Assembly: GCA_965240325.2 (NCBI GenBank)
Contig: OZ251240.1
Span: 1,364,001 to 1,428,000, forward strand
Reading direction: 5' to 3'
Length of the DNA stretch: 64,000 nt
Source of the DNA: Rebecca billardiae RCC1528
Lineage: Eukaryota; Protista; Haptophyta
In this document: one piece after another, positions 2,282 to 17,095 of the stretch
Position numbering within the stretch: position 1 is the first letter of the stretch
Layout of the letters: every line of letters begins with the position of its first letter
Program-made: the position numbers and the translations under genes
The notes under the pieces: generated by a model
What the model saw: the letters and a program-made list of their open reading frames with translations, nothing else
The model's database searches: none
What the model was told of the DNA's origin: nothing

Positions 2282-4697
2282 CGTACGTACTAGCGCTACT
2301 ACTAAATTATTCTGAATACCGCACAACGAGTCACCGGAGCCGGAGGCTCTGCCGCGCGGGGCTCCGCGCAGTGGCCTAACTCAGATTCGGACCGTACATG
2401 ACCCGCCCGGCAGTGAGTGATGATGACCCCCCGCCCCGCCTAATTGCTGGCGCGTCACGTCCGGTCCGTTCGGGCCCCGAGCGCACTCTCAGGTAGTGAC
2501 ACTACATACAGAGTAGTCACTCCGAGACCGAGTCCGAGCAGCCACTGACTGACACGGCGGCCCACGGGATTGTCAGCCCGGAGCTACGGCGGCAATGTTA
2601 CGGCGCGCGGGCCGCCAACTGGTCCCGACTGTCCAGCCGGCGCCCGCGGCAGGCCGCGGCTCCGTGCGGACCGCGCGTAGTCGGGCTCGGCCCGCGACAA
2701 TCACGACGACTACAATAATTCCCGAGTTCCAGCCCGCCAGTGGCACTCCGCAGGTCGCCGCAGGCCCGGCCGAGGCCCCGGGCGCCACCCGCCGCACCCG
2801 GATCGAAGACATTAGTAGCCGCTGCGGCGTTATCGATAGCCTGGTCCAAACGCACTGGAGCACTTTCGGGGATTTTATCGCCAAATGAATGCGGGCCCCT
2901 AGGCACGCGCTCACACCCGGAAACAGCGTAGCAAATGGGCCCAGCCCGGGCGGAGCAAAAGTCTCGGCCTAAAAATCGCATCCGCGGCCCGTCGTGAGCG
3001 TGCGCGCGCGCGCCGCGGACAACTACGGACACATAGAGAATCGTCAGTCTGAATGTGGGTAATTAATTAGCCGAAATGAGCCCAAACGCACGAACTTACT
3101 TATTGGCGTACGTCGAGGCGAGCATGAACCTTGGTACAGGCCATTAGGATGGGCTCTGGTCTGTGCGCAAGTGGCCGTACTCAACTACTGCAAGATCGAC
3201 TATATTACCCATTTTACCCGCATATTATGGGCAATGTACCCGCATAAATATGCGTTCTGAGTCTGTATAATTAAATGCCACTATGTCGTTACATATTCGC
3301 CATAGGTGGGTAGCTGTCCCAGGCTGCACGATTAGTGCGGCGCCCGGGGTGCAGTGGTCGGACGAGGCTCCGCCTGGCCTTCCGCGCACTCCTGCAGACA
3401 AGAAGAGGGCCGGACTCCCACCCGGCCAGGCGTGCGGCAGTCGGTCAGGTGCTGGACCTGGTCTGGAGACCATCTCCTGCGTGGCGACTGGCCGATATGC
3501 GGCACAACGCGCGCCGCCGTGAGCCACACGGCAGGTTCGCAACGGATCCGGATCGCGTGTCCATGGCGGCGTGCATCGAGTCATTCAAGCTGTCAAGTCG
3601 CGTGCCACGCCCGCCCTTTCACTTGGGGCATCAGCACTGCCTACAACGACGACATGTGCGTCCTTAGACGAGGCATAATCGCGGTTCTAGCTGCTCGTCC
3701 AAGGGTCAGATCGCACGTCTTTGCTCGCCCGACAGCCTCAACGGCGGACTGATGTGATCCGCGGGTGACGATGCGACCGCTTCGAGTGCGCCTACGGCCA
3801 CCACCGGGGTGGGGATCGTTCATGGGCACCCTCCGCGTGCCATGACATGCTCTGGCCGTGCGTGGTGACTTGACCCACCGCGCGTAAACGGGGAAGACAC
3901 CTGAGCACGTGCTTCCGAGCCACCCGAATGGCACAATGTGCCACCCATGGACACCAAACACCTGCCAGAGCGCGAGCCTTGCGTGCTGGAGTAGCCGTAC
4001 GACACCATGGAAGACGTATGAGCGCTCTCAACCATCTTCAAGCGACGACTCCGTCGACTCTGCCTCGCAGACCGCGGTACGATCCTCGACCTTGTGCTCG
4101 CAGCAAAGGCCATGACGGTAAAGCAGCACCCAGGGGATGGGAGTCAGCCGGCAGCCACTACACTGCGACTGTACACACCCAGCCCCGCAAGGCGAGCCAT
4201 CCTGATCGCCCCCAGCCCGTCATACAGCTCCACGAGAAGCACAAATCGACTGCCGCCGCTCTGGACGACCCATGCGCAAACGTGACGGGACTGGCCGGAT
4301 GAAGCGTTGGCAATGCGCAGCGCGCCCAACGCTGGTGGTGGCATCGAGTACATGCTAGGGGTAGGCGGTGCCCCATGCGAGCCGTCGCGTGCCGCGCATA
4401 TTCCCGGAGGTGCCCCTTCTCGAAGGCGCAGCGCAACCCAGCAGCTGAGCGTTCGACGCGCGCCGTCGGGCGAGAAGTCGACCTGGCGACGGACCGCGGG
4501 CGGCGGAAGCAACGCAGACATGTCGCTCAAGATGTGCACGCACACCGCCGGGGCACCCGAACGATGTGTCCAGCACTACACCTGACACGAGGCGGCGCAG
4601 TCGTCCAGTCGAGGCTCTCGAGCCCCTTCCGACCTTCGTCGCGGCGAGCCGTCGGACGCCCGGTGGCGATTTTTTGACGAGCGCGACGAGCGCAACC

Positions 4698-6392
4698 CGG
4701 TTTGGCGCTTTTCGGCCAACTCAACAGAAGGATGTTCTGTTGAGTTGGCCGATCGGCGAGGGGGGGGGGTGGGCTCGACAACAGGGCCCAGGCTCTGTTG
4801 AGTTGAGCTTGGAGGCCAGCTGGACTCGACAGAAGAATGCTCTGTTGAGTCGGTCGGACCTTGGCGGCCTCTCGACAGAGCCCTGGTCTGTTGAGTGATC
4901 GTTGGTGGACACCGGTGATGGCTGAAGGGGGTGCCTTGGGGCGCACCGACGGCGTAAAGGCGCTGCGGGCGCTGCGGTGCGCGCGACGGCGGCGCGCCCG
5001 GTGGCGCTGCTGTTGGAAGCTACTGCGCCCCTCTCCACCTCGCGCGCTTCGCTCGTCGTCGCCGTCTCCGCACCTGCTACCGGCATGCACGCGTGCGCAG
5101 CGCCTCGGACGCCCGTTGACGGCGCGCGCCCCGGCAACCGCCCATCACCGGCGGCGGCGAGTGCTGTTGCGGTTGGATGGAATCGGATGGTCTGCTGATA
5201 GTTGGACCAACCAACCAACGCCCTCGGTGGGCTTGGGCTTTGGTGTACGGCGCGTTCGGTGGAACTTGAGCCTCGGCACACTTCCCAGCGAAGTGGCCCA
5301 CCTCGACGTGGCTGGCACGCTCGTCACGCGCTCCCGAGCGCTCGTTTCGCGGTGCCGCAGGCCTTGGGCAGACCAGTCAGACATGGCGCGACCGCATTAC
5401 CGGGCCATGTGCGCACCACATCCGCGCTACGTGGCCTGCGCTCTGGACGACTGGGAGTCAATGCCCGGACCCACTGCATTCCACTGCCCCGCATGCACCC
5501 CGAGTCACCGTCAGAAGGCGTCGACGAGCGCAGAGCGGGTGCGCGGGAGTTCAACCAACTCGTGTACCTTCTTGCAAGCACCAGTGGCGAGGTCGCACGC
5601 CCAATCGTGACCAGCCGTGGAACTTGAGCCGGTCGGCAGCAAAACCACCGTGTGGCGGCCGAGATGAAGTAGCAGCGTGCAACTGCAAGGAGGAGGCGCG
5701 GTGCGTGTCCGCGGCTGGCGAGAGGCGTCCGGACCGTGATGTTCTCGGCCGCGTCCGCGCGCTTCCCGCCGCCGCAGGCCCCGTGTACGCCCGTCGTCGC
5801 CCTCGCCGCGTGGGGCGTGGGCGCCCACCGAGCTCAAGTTCCATGGCAAGGAAGTACTGTACTGATCTACAGTTTACTATGATACAGTACGTAGTAAGAT
5901 TTAACGTGCACACTTGGTTCAACAGTACGTAGTGATCTTGACAATGTGGCCGTGCACGCGGCAACAGGGCTCAGGCGGCCCAGTTGTCGAGTGCAGGCGT
6001 GTGTGGCTTGCGATGGCAGCCAGCCGTCAGCCGGGGCGCCACGCCCACGGTTCGCTGGTGGGCTGGCCCGATGGCGTCGCAGAGCTCACGCGTACGGGGG
6101 AGGAGGGCATCGACGAGGAGACGACCAAGGGCGAGAAGCAGCCGGGGGCACGCAGCACGGGGCTCGGAGCATGCCGCCAGCACGCGTGCCTCCACACCGT
6201 CGCACGTCACCCTTGCTCGTAGCTGTGCGCTGTGCTGCACTCATCTCACCATCGCCCATGCTACGGGCGCGGCCGGGTGGTGGACATCTACCTGTCGGCG
6301 CAGCACTGGCATCGGTGGTCGCCAGACACTTCTCGACTTGCTCTGCGCGTGACAGCAAGGAGACGGCAGCGCCACAGCTGTGTGAGCAGATG
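4698..6392 (+). repeat. Long inverted repeat, left arm (~1.7 kb)
   Basis: Reverse complement of 13329-15017. Mirrored ORF translations are identical or nearly so (e.g. 5624..5932+ equals 13789..14097-). Confidence 0.97.
4714..4895. promoter_or_regulatory. Cluster of four palindromic sites CTC(A/G)ACAGA-N7-TCTGTTGAG (putative protein-binding sites)
   Basis: Sites at about 4714-4750 (16-bp perfect stem), 4773-4808 (degenerate), 4823-4851 and 4871-4895. Mirrored at 14819-15001. Function is inferred. Confidence 0.55.
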
Positions 6393-6499
6393 AGGTCCTA
6401 CTACTCTACTCGGCGAGGCAGTACTGGCATGGACTGCAATCCTGGTGCATGCGAGCTACTGGCATGTTCCCCTACTCAGACGGCAGGGCCATCAATACA

Positions 6500-9400
6500 G
6501 TACGGTGCTGCTTCGGATACACGCGCCCAGCGCTGCTGGTAATAGTAGTAGCGGCGCTGTTGATGCTGCAGCAGCAAGCAGCAGTACAGTACCACGACGG
6601 GCGGCGGCAGTCGCTCCAGCTATCAGCTCGGTGGTGCTCGCTTGAACGGCCTGGGCAATGGCGCGCCGAAAGTAGCGACCTAGCCCATCGCGTCCACCGC
6701 GATGGGGTCGCTGGCAACTGATGATGCTGCGCCCGCGCCCATCCGGGCCAACACCAGCAGCAGCCACGCTCGGCGAATCTGCACCGCATGCGGCAGCAGC
6801 TGCTGGGATGGTCCCGCTGCGGATGACGGCGTTCGCCGCAGATGACAGCTCGGTGTCGCTCGCTCGAGGGGCCACGGCGACGGACGCGTCGAGCGCGTTG
6901 ACGTCACTCCACGCGACCACGGCACTGCCCAGCGCGCTGGAGCCGCTCCCATCTGGTGCTGCTGTGCCTGCGCCCAGCTGGGGCCCAGCTGCAGCAGCGC
7001 TCGACTCCGCGCCGCATTGGCGGCACAAGCAGGGATGGTGCCACGGCGGGCGGCGGCGGTCAACGCAGCTGGAAGCTCGGCGGTGCACGCCCGAGAGGCG
7101 TGGGCGCTGGGCGCACCGAGCGCCGTGACGCTGCTCGCCTCGCCCATGGCGCTGGAGCCGCTGCCATCCGGTGCTGCTGCGCCCGCGCCCAGCCGTGGCA
7201 GCAGCAGCAGCGCTCGACTCCGCGCCGCGTGCGGCAGCAGCAGCAGGGATGGTGCCACGGCGGGCGGCGGCGGTCGACGGAGCTGGAAGCTCGGCGGTGC
7301 ACGCCCGAGAGGCTTGGGCGCTGGGCGCACCGAGCGCCGTGACGCTGCTCGCCTCGCCCATCGCGCTGGAGCCGCTGCCATCCGACGCTGCTGCGCCCGC
7401 GCCCGGCCAGGGCAGCAGCGGCAGCGCTCAACTCCGCGCCGCGTGCGGCGGCAGCAGCAGGGATGGTGCCACGGCGGGCGGCGGCGGTCGACGCAGCTGG
7501 AAGCTCGGCGGTGCACGCCCGAGGGGCGTGGGCGCTGGGCGCACCGAGCGCCGTGACGCTGCTCGCCTCGCCCATGGCGCTGGAGCCGCTGCCATCCGAC
7601 GCTGCTGCGCCCGCGCCCAGCCGTGGCAGCAGCAGCAGCGCTCGACTCCGCGCCGCGTGCGGCGGCAGCAGCAGGGATGGTGCCACGGCGGGCGGCGGCG
7701 GTCGACGGAGCTGGAAGCTCGGCGGTGCACGCCCGAGGGGCGTGGGCGGTGGGCGCATCGAGCGCCGTGACGCTGCTCGCCTCGCCCATGGCGCTGGAGC
7801 CGCTGCCATCCGGTGCTGCTGCGCCCGCGCCCAGCCGTGGCAGCAGTAGCAGCGCTCGACTCCGCGCCGCGTGCGGCAGCAGCAGCAGGGATGGTGCCAT
7901 GGCGGGCGGCGGCTGTCGACGCAGCTGTCAGCTCGGCGGTGCACGCCCGAGGGGCGTGGGCGCTGGGCGCACCGAGCGCCGTGACGCTGCTCGCCTCGCC
8001 CATCGCGCTGGAGCCGCTGCCATCCGGTGCTGCTGCGCCCGCGCCCAGCCGTGGCAGCAGCAGCAGCGCTCGACTCCGCGCCGCGTGCGGCAGCAGCAGC
8101 AGGGATGGTGCCACGGCGGGCGGCGGCGGTCGACGGAGCTGGAAGCTCGGCGGTGCACGCCCGAGAGGCTTGGGCGCTGGGCGCACCGAGCGCCGTGACG
8201 CTGCTCGCCTCGCCCATCGCGCTGGAGCCGCTGCCATCCGACGCTGCTGCGCCCGCGCCCGGCCAGGGCAGCAGCGGCAGCGCTCAACTCCGCGCCGCGT
8301 GCGGCGGCAGCAGCAGGGATGGTGCCACGGCGGGCGGCGGCGGTCGACGCAGCTGGAAGCTCGGCGGTGCACGCCCGAGGGGCGTGGGCGCTGGGCGCAC
8401 CGAGCGCCGTGACGCTGCTCGCCTCGCCCATGGCGCTGGAGCCGCTGCCATCCGACGCTGCTGCGCCCGCGCCCAGCCGTGGCAGCAGCAGCAGCGCTCG
8501 ACTCCGCGCCGCGTGCGGCGGCAGCAGCAGGGATGGTGCCACGGCGGGCGGCGGCGGTCGACGGAGCTGGAAGCTCGGCGGTGCACGCCCGAGGGGCGTG
8601 GGCGGTGGGCGCACCGAGCGCCGTGACGCTGCTCGCCTCGCCCATGGCGCTGGAGCCGCTGCCATCCGGTGCTGCTGCGCCCGCGCCCAGCCGTGGCAGC
8701 AGCAGCAGCGCTCGACTCCGCGCCGCGTGCGGCGGCAGCAGCAGGGATGGTGCCACGGCGGGCGGCGGCGGTCGTCGTAGCTGGAAGCTCGGCGGTGCAC
8801 GCCCGAGGGGCGTGGGCGGTGGGCGCACCGAGCGCCGTGACGCTGCTCGCCTCGCCCATGGCGCTGGAGCCGCTGCCATCCGACGCTGCTGCGCCCGCGC
8901 CCAGCCAGGGCAGCAGCGGCAGCGCTCAACTCCGCGCCGCGTGCGGCAGCAGCAGCAGGGATGGTGCCATGGCGGGCGGCGGCGGTCGACGGAGCTGGAA
9001 GCTCGGCGGTGCACGCCCGAGGGGCGTGGGCGCTGGAGGCACCGAACGCGGTGACGCTGCTCTCCTCGACCATCGCGCTGGAGCCGCTGCCATCCGGTGC
9101 TACTGCGCCCGCGCCCAGCCGTGGCAGCAGCAGCAGCGCTCGACCCCGCGCCGCGTGCGGCGGCAGCAGCAGGGATGGTGCCACGGCGGGCGGCGGCGGT
9201 CGACGGAGCTGTCAGCTCGGCGGTGCACGCCCGAGGGGCGTGGGCGCTGGAGGCACCGAACGCGGTGACGCTGCTCGCCTCGCCCATGGCACTGGAGCCG
9301 CTGCCATCCGACGCTGCTGTGCCGGCGCCCAGCTTGGGCAGCAGCGGCAGCGCTCGACTCCGCGCCGCGTGCGGCGGCAGCAGCAGGGATGGTGCCATGG

Positions 9401-10085
9401 CGGGCGGCGGCTGTCGACGCAGCTGTCAGCTCGGCGGTGCACGCCCGAGGGGCGTGGGCGCTGGAGGCACCGAACGCGGTGACGCTGCTCGCCTCGCCCA
9501 TCGCGCTGGAGCCGCTGCCATCCGGTGCTGCTGCGCCCGCGCCCAGCCGTGGCAGCAGTAGCAGCGCTCGACTCCGCGCCGCGTGCGGCAGCAGCAGCAG
9601 GGATGGTGCCATGGCGGGCGGCGGCTGTCGACGCAGCTGTCAGCTCGACGGTGCACGCCCGAGGGGCGTGGGCGGTGGGCGCACCGAACGCGGTGCCGCT
9701 GCTCGCCTCGCCCATGGCACCGGAGCCGCTGCCATCCGACGCTGCTGCGCCGGCGCCCAGCTTGGGCAGCAGCGGCAGCGCTCGACTCCGCGCCGCGTGC
9801 GGCGGCAGCAGCAGGGATGGTGCCACGGCGGGCGGCCGCAGCAGCTGAAAGCTTGGCAGTGCCCACCCGAGAGGCGTGGGCGCTGGACGCACCGAGCGTG
9901 GTGTCGCCGCTCGCCTCGTTCCGTAGCGCGCTCGAGCCTCTGCCATTCGATGCCGCTGCGCCCGCGCCACGGCGCCGCTGCACGGCTGCAGCTGGCAGCA
10001 GCTGCGCTCAGGAGGCTTCGCGCCGCATGCGGTGGTAGCAGCAGGGAGGTGCCACAGCCAGGCCGGCGGCGGTGGTCGGGCGGTG
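6500..10085 (+). repeat. 214-bp tandem repeat array (~14 conserved units plus degenerate edge units)
   Basis: Motif GCAGGGATGGTGCC recurs every 214 nt from about 7030 to 9812. The period is not a multiple of 3, so the ORFs cycle through frames. Confidence 0.95.
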
Positions 10086-10899
10086 CTGAGTACTGCTTGG
10101 CACGCCGACGACCGGTCGTTATAAACTACGACTCTACTAGCTGCTGACCAGCTGACCGTGTCGCGCCGGAGTGTAGCACGGTGCCCGGATGAATATGACG
10201 CCTATAAGCTGACGGTCGGCGCGGATCTAGTACCGCGCGCGTCACGTAGTCGCCTCATCATCGTCGTCAGCTTAGTCACTGAGCTTATTACTCTGATGAG
10301 TGATGTCGACTACTGCGCGCTGCTACATCATTGAGTTTATTGAGCCGTATAGTCCCGTAAGACTAAGAACAGCAGTAGTCGTAATAAGCAGATCGACGAC
10401 TGCTAAGCCATCAGCGCAGCAGACTATACTCATACTAAGTACTGCTTCATCGCACTTATTATTATACCCGGACGCGACGACTGATCGAGTGTGACTGTGA
10501 GCCGCCAGCACAACCGTGGCGCCATCAGGCATCACGACTGCGTATATGTATGCTCCGGATATATATATATCTGCGCTGTGACGGTGTGGTCATGTGGTGA
10601 TGTGACTTCGTCGGACGAACGGTGGCCGCGGATCGGGAGACGGCCCGGTCGGACTGCCTGCTGATGCTCAGTTGCGCGCGGACTGCGTCAGTCTGATCGA
10701 CGCGATATATATATATATATATATACGCCACTCCGCCTCCGTCCCGTGTAGGCCGGGATGCGCTGATGTCGTAGCCAGTGATGATGCGCGTGATCGATGC
10801 TGATCGATTGACTCATCGATGCTGACGAAAACTACGCTACTACTGTGCCGCCTACCTGCCGGGCTACGACTCGGGTCTGCGCCGCCGGGCTTGCGTGTA

Positions 10900-13160
10900 T
10901 CAGCGTCACTGCATTGCGCGCGCCTTCCGCCCAGGCCCCTCGCGCGTGCAGCACCGAGCTGATAGCTGCATCCACCGCCGCCCGCCCGCCGTGGCGCCAT
11001 CCCTGATGCTGCAGCCGCACTCAGCGCGCCAGGGCGCAGGCGCAGCAGCATCGGATGGGAGCGTCTCCAGCGCGCCAGGCGAGGCGAGAGGCGTCAGCGC
11101 GCTCAATGCGCCCGCCGCCCAGGGCCCTCACGCGCACACCGCCGAGCTTTCAGCTCTAGAGACCACCGTCGCCCACCGTAGCACGATCCCTGCTGCTGCC
11201 GCCGCACGCGGCGCGGAGTCGAGCGCAGCCGCTGCTGCCCAAGCTGGGCGCGGGCGCAGCAGCGTCGGATGGCAGCGGCTCGAGCGCCATGGGCGAGGCG
11301 AGCAGCGGCACCGCGCTCGGTGCGCCCACCGCCCACGCCCCTCGGGCGTGCACCGCCGAGCTTCCAGCTCCGTCGACCGCCGCCGCCCGCCGTGGCACCA
11401 TCCCTGCTGCTGCTGCCGCACGCGGCGCGGAGTCGAGCGCTGCTGCTGCTGCCACGGCTGGGCGCGGGCGCAGCAGCACCGGATGGTAGCGGCTCCAGCG
11501 CGATGGGCGAGGCGAGCAGCGTCACGGCGCTCGGTGCGTCCAGCGCCCACGCCCCTCGGGCGTGCACCGCCGAGCTTCCAGCTACGACGACCGCCGCCGC
11601 CCGCCGTGGCACCATCCCTGCTGCTGCCGCCGCACGCGGCGCGGAGTCGAGCGCTGCTGCTGCTGCCACGGCTGGGCGCGGGCGCAGCAGCACCGGATGG
11701 TAGCGGCTCCAGCGCGATGGGCGAGGCGAGCAGCGTCACGGCGCTCGGTGCGTCCAGCGCCCACGCCCCTCGGGCGTGCACCGCCGAGCTTCCAGCTACG
11801 ACGACCGCCGCCGCCCGCCGTGGCACCATCCCTGCTGCTGCCGCCGCACGCGGCGCGGAGTCGAGCGCTGCTGCTGCTGCCCAAGCTGGGCGCGGGCGCA
11901 GCAGCACCGGATGGCAGCGGCTCCAGCGCGATGGGCGAGGCGAGCAGCGTCACGGCGCTCGGTGCGTCCAGCGCCTATGCCCCTCGGGCGTGAACCGCCG
12001 AGCTGACAGCTGCGTCGACCGCCGCCGCCCGCCGTGGCACCATCCCTGCTGCTGCCGCCGCACGCGGCGCGGAGTCGAGCGCTGCTGCTGCTGCCACGGC
12101 TGGGCGCGGGCGCAGTAGCACCGGATGGCAGCGGCTCCAGCGCGATGGGCGAGGCGAGCAGCGTCACGGCGCTCGGTGCGTCCAGCGCCCACGCCCCTTG
12201 GGCGTGCACCGCCGAGCTTCCAGCTACGTCGACCGCCGCCGCCCGCCGTGGCACCATCCCTGCTGCTGCCGCCGCACGCGGCGCGGAGTCGAGCGCTGCT
12301 GCTGCTGCCACGGCTGGGCGCGGGCGCAGCAGCGTCGGATGGCAGCGGCTCCAGCGCCATGGGCGAGGCGAGCAGCGCCACGGCGCTCGGTACGCCCACC
12401 GCCCACGCCCCTCGGGCGTGCACCGCCGAGCTGACAGCTCCGTCGACCGCCGCCGCCCGCCGTGGCACCATCCCTGCTGCTGCCGCCGCACGCGGCGCGG
12501 AGTCGAGCGCTGCTGCTGCTGCCCGCGCGGGCGCAGCAGCACCGGATGGCAGCGGCTCCAGCGCGATGGGCGAGGCGAGCAGCGTCACGGCGCTCGATGC
12601 GCCCACCGCCCACGCCCCTCGGGCGTGCACCGCCGAGCTGACAGCTCCGTGGACCGCCGCCGCCCGCCGTGGCACCATCCCTGCTGCTGCTGCCGCACAC
12701 GGCGCGGAGTTGAGCGCAGCTGCTGATGCCCCGGCTGGGCGCGGGCGCAGCAGCACCGGATGGCAGCGGCTCCAGCGCGATGGTCGAGGCGAGCAGCGTC
12801 ACCGCGCTCGGTGCGTCCAGCGCCCACGCCCCTCGGGCGTGCACCGCCGAGCTGACAGCTACGTCGACCGCCGCCGCCCGCCGTGGCACCATCCCTGCCG
12901 CTGCCCGCGGCGGGGAGTTGAGCGCAGCTGCTGCTGCCCAAGCTGGGCGCAGGCACAGCAGCACCAGATGGCGACGCCTCCAGCGCGCTGGGCAGTGCCG
13001 TGGGCGCATCGAACAGCGTCACCGTGCTCGGCGCGTCCGTCGTCCAGGCCCGTCGAACCAGTGACACCAAGCTGTCAGCCGCGGCGACCGCCGTCATCCG
13101 CGCAGGACCATCCCAGCGGCCCAGCTGCTGCCGCCGCGTGCGGCGTAGAGTCGAGCGCCC
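10900..13160 (-). repeat. 214-bp tandem repeat array in inverted orientation (~11 units)
   Basis: GGCACCATCCCTGC recurs at about 11180, 11394, 11608 ... 12885. It is the reverse complement of the left array unit. Confidence 0.95.
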
Positions 13161-13328
13161 CTCATCCTGCCTGCAGCGTGGGGCGCAGGTGTTTGAAGCA
13201 GCACCGGGCGGTTGGTCCTGCGCTCCTGGGCACGGCTATGCACCTGTTGGGCTCATGGATGCGGGGGAATGCCAGCGCCCGCCATGCGTGCTCAGTCTAT
13301 CAGCCTCACTGAGCAGAGCAGCACCTGA

Positions 13329-15017
13329 CATCTGCTCACACAGCTGTGGCGCTGCCGTCTCCTTGCTGTCACGCGCAGAGCAAGTCGAGAAGTGTCTGGC
13401 GACCACCGATGCCAGTGCTGCGCCGACAGGTAGATGTCCACCACCCGGCCGCGCCCGTAGCATGGGCGATGGTGAGATGAGTGCAGCACAGCGCACAGCT
13501 ACGAGCAAGGGTGACGTGCGACGGTGTGGAGGCACGCGTGCTGGCGGCATGCTCCGAGCCCCGTGCTGCGTGCCCCCGGCTGCTTCTCGCCCTTGGTCGT
13601 CTCCTCGTCGATGCCCTCCTCCCCCGTACGCGTGAGCTCTGCGACGCCATCGGGCCAGCCCACCAGCGAACCGTGGGCGTGGCGCCCCGGCTGACGGCTG
13701 GCTGCCATCGCAAGCCACACACGCCTGCACTCGACAACTGGGCCGCCTGAGCCCTGTTGCCGCGTGCACGGCCACATTGTCAAGATCACTACGTACTGTT
13801 GAACCAAGTGTGCACGTTAAATCTTACTACGTACTGTATCATAGTAAACTGTAGATCAGTACAGTACTTCCTTGCCATGGAACTTGAGCTCGGTGGGCGC
13901 CCACGCCCCACGCGGCGAGGGCGACGACGGGCGTACACGGGGCCTGCGGCGGCGGGAAGCGCGCGGACGCGGCCGAGAACATCACGGTCCGGACGCCTCT
14001 CGCCAGCCGCGGACACGCACCGCGCCTCCTCCTTGCAGTTGCACGCTGCTACTTCATCTCGGCCGCCACACGGTGGTTTTGCTGCCGACCGGCTCAAGTT
14101 CCACGGCTGGTCACGATTGGGCGTGCGACCTCGCCACTGGTGCTTGCAAGAAGGTACACGAGTTGGTTGAACTCCCGCGCACCCGCTCTGCGCTCGTCGA
14201 CGCCTTCTGACGGTGACTCGGGGTGCATGCGGGGCAGTGGAATGCAGTGGGTCCGGGCATTGACTCCCAGTCGTCCAGAGCGCAGGCCGCGTAGCGCGGA
14301 TGTGGTGCGCACATGGCCCGGTAATGCGGTCGCGCCATGTCTGACTGGTCTGCCCAAGGCCTGCGGCACCGCGAAACGAGCGCTCGGGAGCGCGTGACGA
14401 GCGTGCCAGCCACGTCGAGGTGGGCCACTTCGCTGGGAAATGTGCCGAGGCTCAAGTTCCACCGAACGCTCCGTACACCAAAGCCCAAGCCCACCAAGGG
14501 CGTTGGTTGGTTGGTCCAACTATCAGCAGACCATCCGATTCCATCCAACCGCAACAGCACTCGCCGCCGCCGGTGATGGGCGGTTGCCGGGGCGCGCGCC
14601 GTCAACGGGCGTCCGAGGCGCTGCGCACGCGTGCATGCCGGTAGCAGGTGCGGAGACGGCGACGACGAGCGAAGCGCGCGAGGTGGAGAGGGGCGCAGTA
14701 GCTTCCAACAGCAGCGCCACCGGGCGCGCCGCCGTCGCGCGCACCGCAGCGCCCGCAGCGCCTTTACGCCGTCGGTGCGCCCCAAGGCACCCCCATCACC
14801 GGTGTCCACCAACGATCAACTCAACAGACCAGGGCTCTGTCGAGAGGCCGCCAACGTCCGACCGACTCAACAGAGCATTCTTCTGTCGAGTCCAGCTGGC
14901 CTCCAAGCTCAACTCAACAGAGCCTGGGCCCTGTTGTCGAGCCCACCCCCCCCCCTCGCCGATCGGCCAACTCAACAGAACATCCTTCTGTTGAGTTGGC
15001 CGAAAAGCGCCAAACCG
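13329..15017 (-). repeat. Long inverted repeat, right arm (~1.7 kb)
   Basis: Reverse complement of 4698-6392 with only a handful of substitutions and small indels. Confidence 0.97.
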
Positions 15018-15295
15018 TATTGACGAGCGACGAGAAAAATCGGGAGAAATGAGGCGCCCAAAATCCGAAAAAAGGCTTTTTCAGTGGCGAAAATCGGGAT
15101 GGACCAGGCTATTATCGAGTATTCGATATATAAGTAGACCGTGAGTGTGATAATGACTCAGCCCGGCGCCGGCGGCCGACGAGTAACTAGGGCGGCGCGG
15201 GACCGGCGGCGGACGACGCCAGAATGTCGACTTCATATGTCGAGAATAAATATATATCGATCTGCTGCTCGGCGACTGCTCGACGTCACTCACCG

Positions 15296-17017
15296 TAGGG
15301 GGGCCAAAGTGGCACTGTAGCGTTACTGACGGCCACGAGCGCGGGTCCTAGCGAGTGTTTAGAGCTGATTTCGGGCTGGATAATCATTTGCCCTCTGGAG
15401 GGGTCTGGGCCGGCCATGGAAAAAAATCAGGTGCACATACCCTGAATATAGGGCGTAACGGCTAGTATATTTACTTATTAGAATGAGCCTGAACTTATTG
15501 GAAACGGCATGTAACGGTCGTCCTATATGTGACATATAGACCATGTCGACCTCACTTTGATAGAGCATCTCAGCGAGATCGTTCTGAGTCCCCAGCAGCA
15601 GCAGGTCCCAACATGCGATATAGGCTGTGTACTGGCAGGCTGTCAAATATGTAGTTTCCTAGAAGCCACCGATCGTTACATACCCACTGTGTATATAGGC
15701 GCCGCCATGCTGATGAATACAGCCTCGTCTGATCTCGAGCTGCGAGATACGTTTTCAGACTGTGTATACGGCCACGCGTACGGCGTATTGCAGACATAGT
15801 AGACCCAAAGCACCGGCCCCACGTCCTTAGCCCGGGAGTGCTCTCGGTCATAGTCAAGGTTTAAAGTGACTCGAGCCAACCGTCACCGCTCCCTGGCCGA
15901 GACCTACGAGGCAGGTCAAATCTGTCGTCGTCGCAGTGCGGCACAGTGCCGAGCATGCGATTCGGCAGCAAACGTCTGCTCCAGGCGGTGGCTGGCGTGT
16001 CTGCACCAAACCAGGCTGGATGGGATTGGTCCATATAGGTACGCACTACCCTGTTCCGCGCTATTTCTGGGCTTAGGGGCGGATATTCGGCCTACAGAGG
16101 CTGATCCGGCGCTGTTCGGCGCTCCTGGCTGGCTGCGCGGAGCCCAACGGCAAGCGCCGGCGTGTGCAAGGTGTCAAGATTGAGACGGTCTCTGACGCTC
16201 CCGCCGGTCTTGGGCGCACCAGGGTGCATGAGGGCCCATCTGCATCTGCTTCTGCAGGCATGAGCGTCACAGGGGCGCGCTTGCAGGCACGGTCGAGTGC
16301 ACGTCGGACCTGTCGAATGAGCCAACCGCTGCCTGCGAGCACGTCCGCGACGTCCTGAGAGGCGAATGGGAGGCGCCCAGACGCCATCAGAGGGCACACG
16401 TGACCCATACCCAACGTACTGACCATCGCAAGTGCCACGGCAGGTGCAAACACGGGCCCTACAAGCGGAACATGACGGTTGCGAGCTCCGCGGAGGTGTT
16501 GCGCGCGAGCTCGCGCCGGTCTGCTGACGGCGATTCCGGCGCAGCAGGGCAGGTTAGGCGAGCTGGGCATCCACATACATACATGGGCACTTGGTGCGAG
16601 CATCGATCTCAACTGTGCGAGTTGATCATGAGCCACACCGTGCGGTAGCGTGACGGGCGCACGCAGCGCGCCAATTCAAGCCGGCCGACGCGCGCCGCGC
16701 ACGGCGCGAGATGGCCAAGAAGCGGGTGGTGAGCCGCTGGTGGCGCAAAGGCACGGGTCAGTAGCGCCCACCAGCGTCACGCGCGCGCGCACCCGAGACC
16801 ATCTCGGCGTCTCAAAGGTCGCGAGCGCGCGGCGGTCCACTGCCTCCGGCCGCTCGCGCTGGAGCGGAACCGAGCTCTGAGCGTCCGAAGGCGTGAAGCT
16901 CGATTTTCGAGCGGGGTCCGAGAAAAAGGCTCCGCGCCACCCTAAAAGGCCGAGGGCGGAGCGAAAATGCGACGCGACTTTGCTTTTCATTTTTAAATGG
17001 GCGGTTTGGCCCCCCTA
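15296..17017. mobile_element. 1.7-kb non-autonomous DNA transposon (13-bp TIR, 7-bp TSD)
   Basis: TIR TAGGGGGGCCAAA at 15296-15308 and TTTGGCCCCCCTA at 17005-17017, flanked by the direct repeat CTCACCG (15289-15295 and 17018-17024). Confidence 0.85.
15542..15870 (+). pseudogene. Possible decayed hAT-like transposase fragment
   Basis: 'IVLSPQQQQV..DIGCVL..CSFLEATDRYIPTV' resembles the hAT 'LxxxxW..VLxP...TxxLE..YPT' helix region. A downstream in-frame '*SRFK' could be a decayed DPRFK. Stop codons are present. The match is by eye only. Confidence 0.3.
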
Positions 17018-17095
17018 CTCACCGTACTGCCGTAGTCATGTACGATCACCGAACGAAGAGTGGTGGCGTGCGCGGCGACAACGCACACATACCGG

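Follow-up and report, generated by a model that had tools for sequence, protein, structure and literature searches.

TAG-ended DNA transposons with 7-bp target duplications in the haptophyte Rebecca billardiae and their probable affinity to hAT elements

The DNA described here (the window) is a stretch of 64,000 nucleotides from the haptophyte Rebecca billardiae RCC1528 (NCBI GenBank assembly GCA_965240325.2, contig OZ251240.1; G000:C23:1364001-1428000 in our numbering). The genome, G000, spans 72 Mb in 41 contigs and has roughly 60-85% G+C. Contigs of this genome are labeled C followed by a number, and genomic loci that were fetched for comparison are labeled L followed by three digits. The window carries two adjacent DNA transposons, element A and element B. 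Both have TAG...CTA ends and short inverted repeats, and each is bounded by a 7-bp duplication of its target. These features had been noticed in an earlier reading of the letters alone (the sequence-only reading), and they were found at the positions given there. A repeat of 8 bp fits neither element, even when the element boundaries are shifted. As described below, the 7-bp duplication holds throughout the genome. A and B are non-autonomous members of a larger TAG-ended group, which on present sequence grounds is best placed as a divergent hAT-like lineage.

Two short transposons and a nested foldback element

The sequence-only reading had taken A to be a single element running from 2837 to 15111. 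A genome search with its left 2.1 kb and its right 313 bp gave a different picture. The standard genomic copy of A is about 1,938 bp long, and its positions 1-1856 run straight into the last 82-90 bp. An autonomous element of 12.3 kb was therefore rejected, as the interval holds a 1,938-bp copy of A that is interrupted by a nested element of 10,330 bp, element C (Table 1). Annotators should be aware that two unrelated elements, one nested in the other, make up this "12-kb element".

A and B are young, high-copy elements that have been recently active. The 12-mer TAGCCTGGTCCA at the left end of A occurs 143 times in the genome, against 2 occurrences of the reversed control, and every one of the 143 marks an end, left or right, of one of about 75 copies of A, which are 1,936-1,950 bp long. 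Median pairwise identity is 97.1% among copies of A and 99.2% among copies of B. The copy of A in the window is 99.95% identical to a copy at C7:1412735.

Both elements are also non-coding. Their G+C content is flat over codon positions, with no coding signal, and their open frames have no Pfam match. A search for coding remnants in A, B and family D (introduced below) found none, and no tRNA or Rfam family was found in the region beside the window copies. The absence of a transposase gene and the uniform, short copies, with long relatives only in sister families D and E, are the features of non-autonomous DNA transposons.

Element C is of the foldback type. Its ends, CAACCCGGTTTGGCGC and, as reverse complement, CAATACGGTTTGGCGC, are of the CAA...TTG type. 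At 4693-6392 and 13329-15022 lie its inverted arms, which are about 1.7 kb long and carry palindromic CAACTCAACAG/CTGTTGAGTTG sites. Between the arms, a 214-bp satellite forms two arrays of opposite orientation (about 6589-10047 and 10880-13174). A Pfam search found no domain in C. Further copies lie on six contigs (C1, C10, C11, C15, C23 and C35). C duplicated its own target, ACGAGCG, and the unfilled site is present in uninterrupted copies of A. It thus has a different end type, yet it too was inserted with a 7-base stagger.

Table 1. Positions of elements A, B and C and of their target duplications in the window
Feature	Position	Strand	Remarks
7-bp duplication of A, TTATCGA, left copy	2830-2836	.	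identical to 15112-15118
Element A, left 1,856 bp	2837-4692	+	about 40 scored genomic copies match positions 1-1856 at 96-100%
Left end repeat of A, 12 bp, TAGCCTGGTCCA	2837-2848	+	TTATCGA followed by TAGCCTGGTCCA spans 2830-2848
7-bp duplication of C, ACGAGCG, left copy	4686-4692	.	also A sequence; empty site in 26 uninterrupted copies of A
Nested element C, 10,330 bp	4693-15022	.	own ends and own 7-bp duplication
7-bp duplication of C, ACGAGCG, right copy	15023-15029	.	read in the sequence; empty sites
Element A, right 82 bp	15030-15111	+	terminates in TGGACCAGGCTA (15100-15111); about 74 matching right ends in the genome
7-bp duplication of A, TTATCGA, right copy	15112-15118	.	read in the sequence
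7-bp duplication of B, CTCACCG, left copy	15289-15295	.	read in the sequence
Element B, 1,722 bp, non-coding	15296-17017	+	13-bp end repeats; at least 40 copies at 98-99% identity
End repeats of B, 13 bp, TAGGGGGGCCAAA	15296-15308 and 17005-17017		right end reads TTTGGCCCCCCTA then CTCACCG (17005-17024)
7-bp duplication of B, CTCACCG, right copy	17018-17024	.	read in the sequence

An autonomous copy of A was sought by pairing its ends by coordinates and fetching the long or unpaired cases. Each of these proved to be either a nested copy or a short fragment, and the adjoining open frames belong to host genes (among them an ion channel, a mannosyltransferase, an RCC1 gene and an enoyl-CoA hydratase). 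A 7.7-kb copy of A in L087 was likewise rejected as a coding copy, as it contains a nested B and an unrelated 4.1-kb element, and is without a Pfam domain. The 4.1-kb element (L087:3385-7521, on contig C31) lies inside the copy of A beside the copy of B. It has 39-bp inverted repeats, TGACCAGGTCGTTCCCCCTGCACTGGGAATCCGCGGTTT, no Pfam domain and no clear duplication. On contig C24, a miniature derivative of A of about 88 bp (L094:9813-9900) fuses 66 bp from the right end to a degenerate left end repeat, and it adjoins a 1.8-kb copy of family D (L094:7905-9703).

A 7-bp duplication with a preferred target

How general is the 7-bp duplication? For a survey, 39 copies of A and 39 copies of B were fetched with their flanks, and 37 of the latter could be read at both ends. 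Among the 39 other copies of A, 32 have a perfect 7-bp duplication and a single copy has 6 bp, and in the remaining six the flanks are unrelated. In family B the duplication is a perfect 7 bp in 26/37 copies, of which 23 were read by script and three with a mutated end (L059, L084 and L085) by eye; one copy has a 6-bp duplication. The two 6-bp copies of the survey are L009 and L070. Together, the duplication is exactly 7 bp in 58/76 copies and 8 bp in none.

The length of the duplication is fixed at 7 by paralogous empty sites. In addition to the site of C described above, ATTTATA flanks the copy of B nested in A at L087, and the exact unfilled site, CCCATTTATACCCGC, is present in nine further copies of A. 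The 7-bp rule holds genome-wide, and it reflects a real stagger and not eroded 8-bp duplications. The sequence-only reading was thus right to see in A and B genuine DNA transposons whose ends are TAG...CTA and whose stagger is consistently 7 bp, and the genome-wide counts of end repeats and duplications far exceed what chance would give.

Two kinds of small irregularity were seen among the copies. In four copies of B (L049, L051, L055 and L060), one copy of the duplication has two extra bases (TG or GG). These lie exactly one base off the transposon end, and the end-adjacent base is C each time. The extra bases could be a repair scar linked to the cutting mechanism. Copy-specific insertions of 6-7 bases (once 14) were also found in copies of A and B (L068, L026, L054, L072 and L029). 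They are near-tandem repeats of neighboring bases, such as CATGTGG followed by CATGTCG in L068. These insertions look like the excision footprints of 7-bp-duplicating elements, with replication slippage as the alternative.

The sites that were entered are not random in composition. From 59 rebuilt pre-insertion sites, the duplicated 7 bases were shown to be A+T-rich, with a G+C content of 0.45 against 0.62 in the flanks. The target of family A is nTnnnAn. Of 70 cases, 43 have T at position 2 or A at position 6, with a background of 0.20 (p = 8e-14). Neither G at the second position nor C at the sixth (G2/C6) was ever seen. In their 8-bp targets, Hermes and further members of the hAT superfamily favor nTnnnnAn (PMC10368747). 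The target of A is the same pattern with one central base fewer.

When symmetrized, the target consensus is approximately CTAnTAG. A and B tend to insert at sites that contain CTA or TAG, and this consensus resembles two abutting element ends. A copy of A (L043) and a copy of B (L072) were inserted within the terminal TAGG of other TAG-ended elements and duplicated these four bases. Such insertions into other TAG ends may be explained by the target consensus.

A group of TAG-ended families and a candidate enzyme

Are A and B one family? The sequence-only reading had placed them together, partly on subterminal words that they share. These words are indeed present in both at similar offsets, and a small block, AATGAGCC...GAACTTA..TTGG, recurs in the same way. 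By themselves they are marginal evidence. The ends of A and B align no better than shuffled sequence (left z = -0.3, right z = 2.2), and no BLAST similarity was found between the two elements. A and B are distinct non-autonomous families in a larger group.

The link between A and B runs via a further family, D, which was found because the copy of B in L072 sits in a terminus of D. The end repeat of D, TAGGGGGTCCAAGCC, has 88 ends in the genome and equals that of B at 11 of the first 12 bases. The left 420 bp of D is a collinear homolog of the left end of A (z = 12.5 against shuffles), and the GAACTTAC-TATTG block is among the words kept between A and D. The end 15-mer of D was also scanned over metagenome contigs, and the matches were isolated ones at chance level, without likeness to A, B or D.

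D comprises about 25 pairs of ends about 1.80 kb apart, other long pairs of 2.3, 4.0 and 5.0 kb, and a longest copy of 6,241 bp (C7:4090693-4096933). A variant, family E, has the end repeat TAGGGGGTCCAG with 42 ends; about 17 pairs span about 1.78 kb, another long pair spans 4.8 kb, and the longest copy is 6,303 bp (C26:600448-606750). The inverted end repeats of the whole group are 12-15 bp long and start with TAG. The end motifs of A (TAGCCTGGTCCAAA), B (TAGGGGGGCCAAA), D (TAGGGGGTCCAAGCC) and E (TAGGGGGTCCAGGCC) are nearly identical, and these TAG-ended families, at least four in all, form one group.

The group also has candidate sites for transposase binding. Six copies of the hexamer GATTTT/AAAATC lie in A, each within 140 bp of an end, and the 1.7-kb interior has none. 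B carries the hexamer close to each of its ends, and D close to its right end. This layout is the one expected of transposase-binding repeats.

Which enzyme moves A and B? Many short copies together with one long copy are the usual picture of non-autonomous and autonomous elements, so the single long copies of D and E are the likely autonomous sources. For A itself no autonomous copy was found, and the only long relatives lie in its sister families. Within the long copy of E, a 715-residue open frame contains a Pfam Chromo match at C26:601325-601438 (26.5 bits, above the cut-off), on the strand that reads toward the near end. Weak chromodomain matches, nearly identical to one another, were found in 146-residue open frames at seven further loci (20.6 bits at six of them and 19.0 bits at one): C14:240067, C19:957272, C20:609, C25:627176, C29:821959, C36:129212 and C11:235460. 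They look like a repeated element with a chromodomain-like module.

The following mechanism is proposed. As non-coding cut-and-paste elements, A (1.94 kb) and B (1.72 kb) would be moved in trans by a transposase encoded elsewhere, with the long D and E copies as its likely sources. This transposase would recognize the TAG-started inverted ends of 12-15 bp, probably together with subterminal sites of the CGATTTT type. It would join the element to target DNA whose two strands are cut 7 bases apart, and the repair that follows would leave the 7-bp duplication. For the enzyme itself, a divergent DDE transposase of the hAT type with a chromodomain tail is the most likely candidate. Both the mobilization in trans by D or E enzymes and the hAT nature of the enzyme are points that we infer from the elements themselves.

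Alternatives and comparison with known transposons

hAT elements have short terminal inverted repeats of about 10-25 bp, and their ends follow the consensus 5'-YARNG. The ends of B, D and E, which start with TAGGG and carry repeats of 12-15 bp, fit this consensus, as the sequence-only reading had suggested in calling the ends hAT-like, and the target of A mirrors that of hAT elements. Several results weigh against a hAT-type enzyme acting in trans. The end of A is TAGCC and not TAGNG, so that it fits YARNG at only 4/5 positions. Family B shows only the depletion of G2/C6, and its preference for T2/A6 is weak. No copy of A has an internal coding region, all of its exact end 12-mers lying in 1.94-kb copies, nested copies or fragments. 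A hAT transposase has a DDE RNase-H core with an inserted helical domain, a dimerization domain at the C terminus and, in many cases, a BED finger. In a genome-wide search, Pfam Dimer_Tnp_hAT (PF05699) matched only at C17:765118-765351 (31.5 bits, with one in-frame TAG stop) and C5:3188260 (17.7 bits), both outside the long copies of D and E, and zf-BED (PF02892) had no match anywhere in the genome. The match on C17 is the sole convincing one in 72 Mb, and it lies away from the listed ends of A, D and E. Because the long D and E copies have no hAT-dimer or BED match, the hAT assignment draws its support from the ends, from the target rule and from published precedent, and not from the protein.

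The scarcity of hAT domains would also agree with A and B being real 7-bp-duplicating transposons of another kind (P/Galileo-like, Mutator-like, Kyakuja/KDZ or undescribed) whose hAT-like ends had arisen by convergence. A 7-bp duplication was also made here by the differently ended element C, and Kyakuja too makes 7-bp duplications (PMC12730594). A non-hAT enzyme is nevertheless less likely, given that the nTnnnAn target and the TAGGG ends point to hAT and that none of the named alternatives matches in its ends. Kyakuja does not fit because it has 5'-CA..TG-3' ends without inverted repeats (PMC12730594), whereas A and B have TAG..CTA ends with perfect inverted repeats of 12-13 bp. The end structures of Galileo, P and Mutator elements differ as well, as set out below. 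It is less probable still that the families A and B are unrelated and that each is mobilized by an enzyme of its own, with the TAG start and the 7-bp length coinciding in a genome where 7-bp duplications are common. The missing BLAST similarity, the shuffle-like alignment of their ends and the differing strength of their target preferences would all agree with that explanation. Against it stand the end repeats of B and D, which differ at 1/12 bases, the collinear subterminal homology of A and D, and the recurrence of CGATTTT-type subterminal sites in all families and of the AATGAGCC block at similar offsets. A true duplication of 8 bp with one eroded end, or a set of chance pairings, is almost certainly wrong. 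No support for it was found apart from a few copies with 6 bp or with non-matching flanks, and it is refuted by the survey counts and by the empty sites. The placement of A and B as non-autonomous members of a divergent, hAT-like group therefore remains the favored one, with moderate confidence.

DNA transposons are routinely assigned to superfamilies by how long their target duplication is. Galileo and 1360, of the P superfamily, make 7-bp duplications, but they have inverted repeats of hundreds of bases and different termini, and P elements have 31-bp repeats that start with CATG. Transposases of this superfamily are marked by a THAP DNA-binding domain and a GTP-binding insertion. With repeats of 12-13 bp and a TAG start, A and B were not assigned to the P superfamily. 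The nested C, with its long arms and 7-bp duplication, is closer in shape to Galileo than either A or B. Mutator elements have long repeats and duplications of 8-11 bp. Dada elements make duplications of 6-7 bp and insert into specific multicopy small-RNA genes. They were ruled out because the flanks of the 59 insertions are mutually unrelated and no small-RNA gene is targeted, as the search beside the window copies indicated.

The likeness to Hermes, hobo and Ac is closer. In common with these elements, A and B have short inverted ends that start with YAG and short subterminal repeats. The hAT preference for T at the second and A at the second-last position of the target (PMC10368747) has a counterpart, one base shorter, in family A, and B shows only the depletion of G2/C6. 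They differ in that the targets of Hermes, hobo and Ac are 8 bp long and those of A and B are 7 bp long, and in that the BED and hAT-dimer domains of the former were not detected here. Most hAT elements make 8-bp duplications, with hAT5 (5 bp) and hAT6 (6 bp) as exceptions (PMC12730594). In December 2025, hAT elements with 7-bp duplications were named hAT7 in rust fungi of the Pucciniales (Biology (Basel) 2025, 14:1741, PMC12730594). The sequence-only reading had suggested an undescribed lineage that combines hAT-like ends with a 7-bp stagger. This combination has thus already been described, and A and B are an unusual variant and not a new type.

How do A and B compare with hAT7? Both are cut-and-paste elements with duplications of 7 bp instead of 8 bp. 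hAT7 was placed by transposase phylogeny near Ac/Tam3-type fungal and plant hATs, and many of its families carry a TET/JBP gene (PMC12730594). The elements described here come from a GC-rich alga and not from a rust fungus; those in the window are non-coding, and their candidate source has a chromodomain and no Pfam hAT-dimer or BED match. As abundant and near-identical substrates, A and B would be suited to probing the activity of the candidate chromodomain transposase of the long copies and its targeting by chromatin state. If the enzyme proves to be of the hAT type, so large and clean a set of 7-bp insertions, with the ends and the target rule of hAT elements and in an alga far from the rust fungi, would suggest that stagger length can evolve among hAT-like enzymes. 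The TAG-ended families may be an independent, deeply divergent hAT-like (or new) lineage of haptophyte-type algae, with a chromodomain transposase, in which the stagger was shortened from 8 to 7 bp and the T...A rule was kept. On this tentative and still rather doubtful proposal, they would represent a second, separate origin of the 7-bp duplication in the hAT world, beside that of hAT7.

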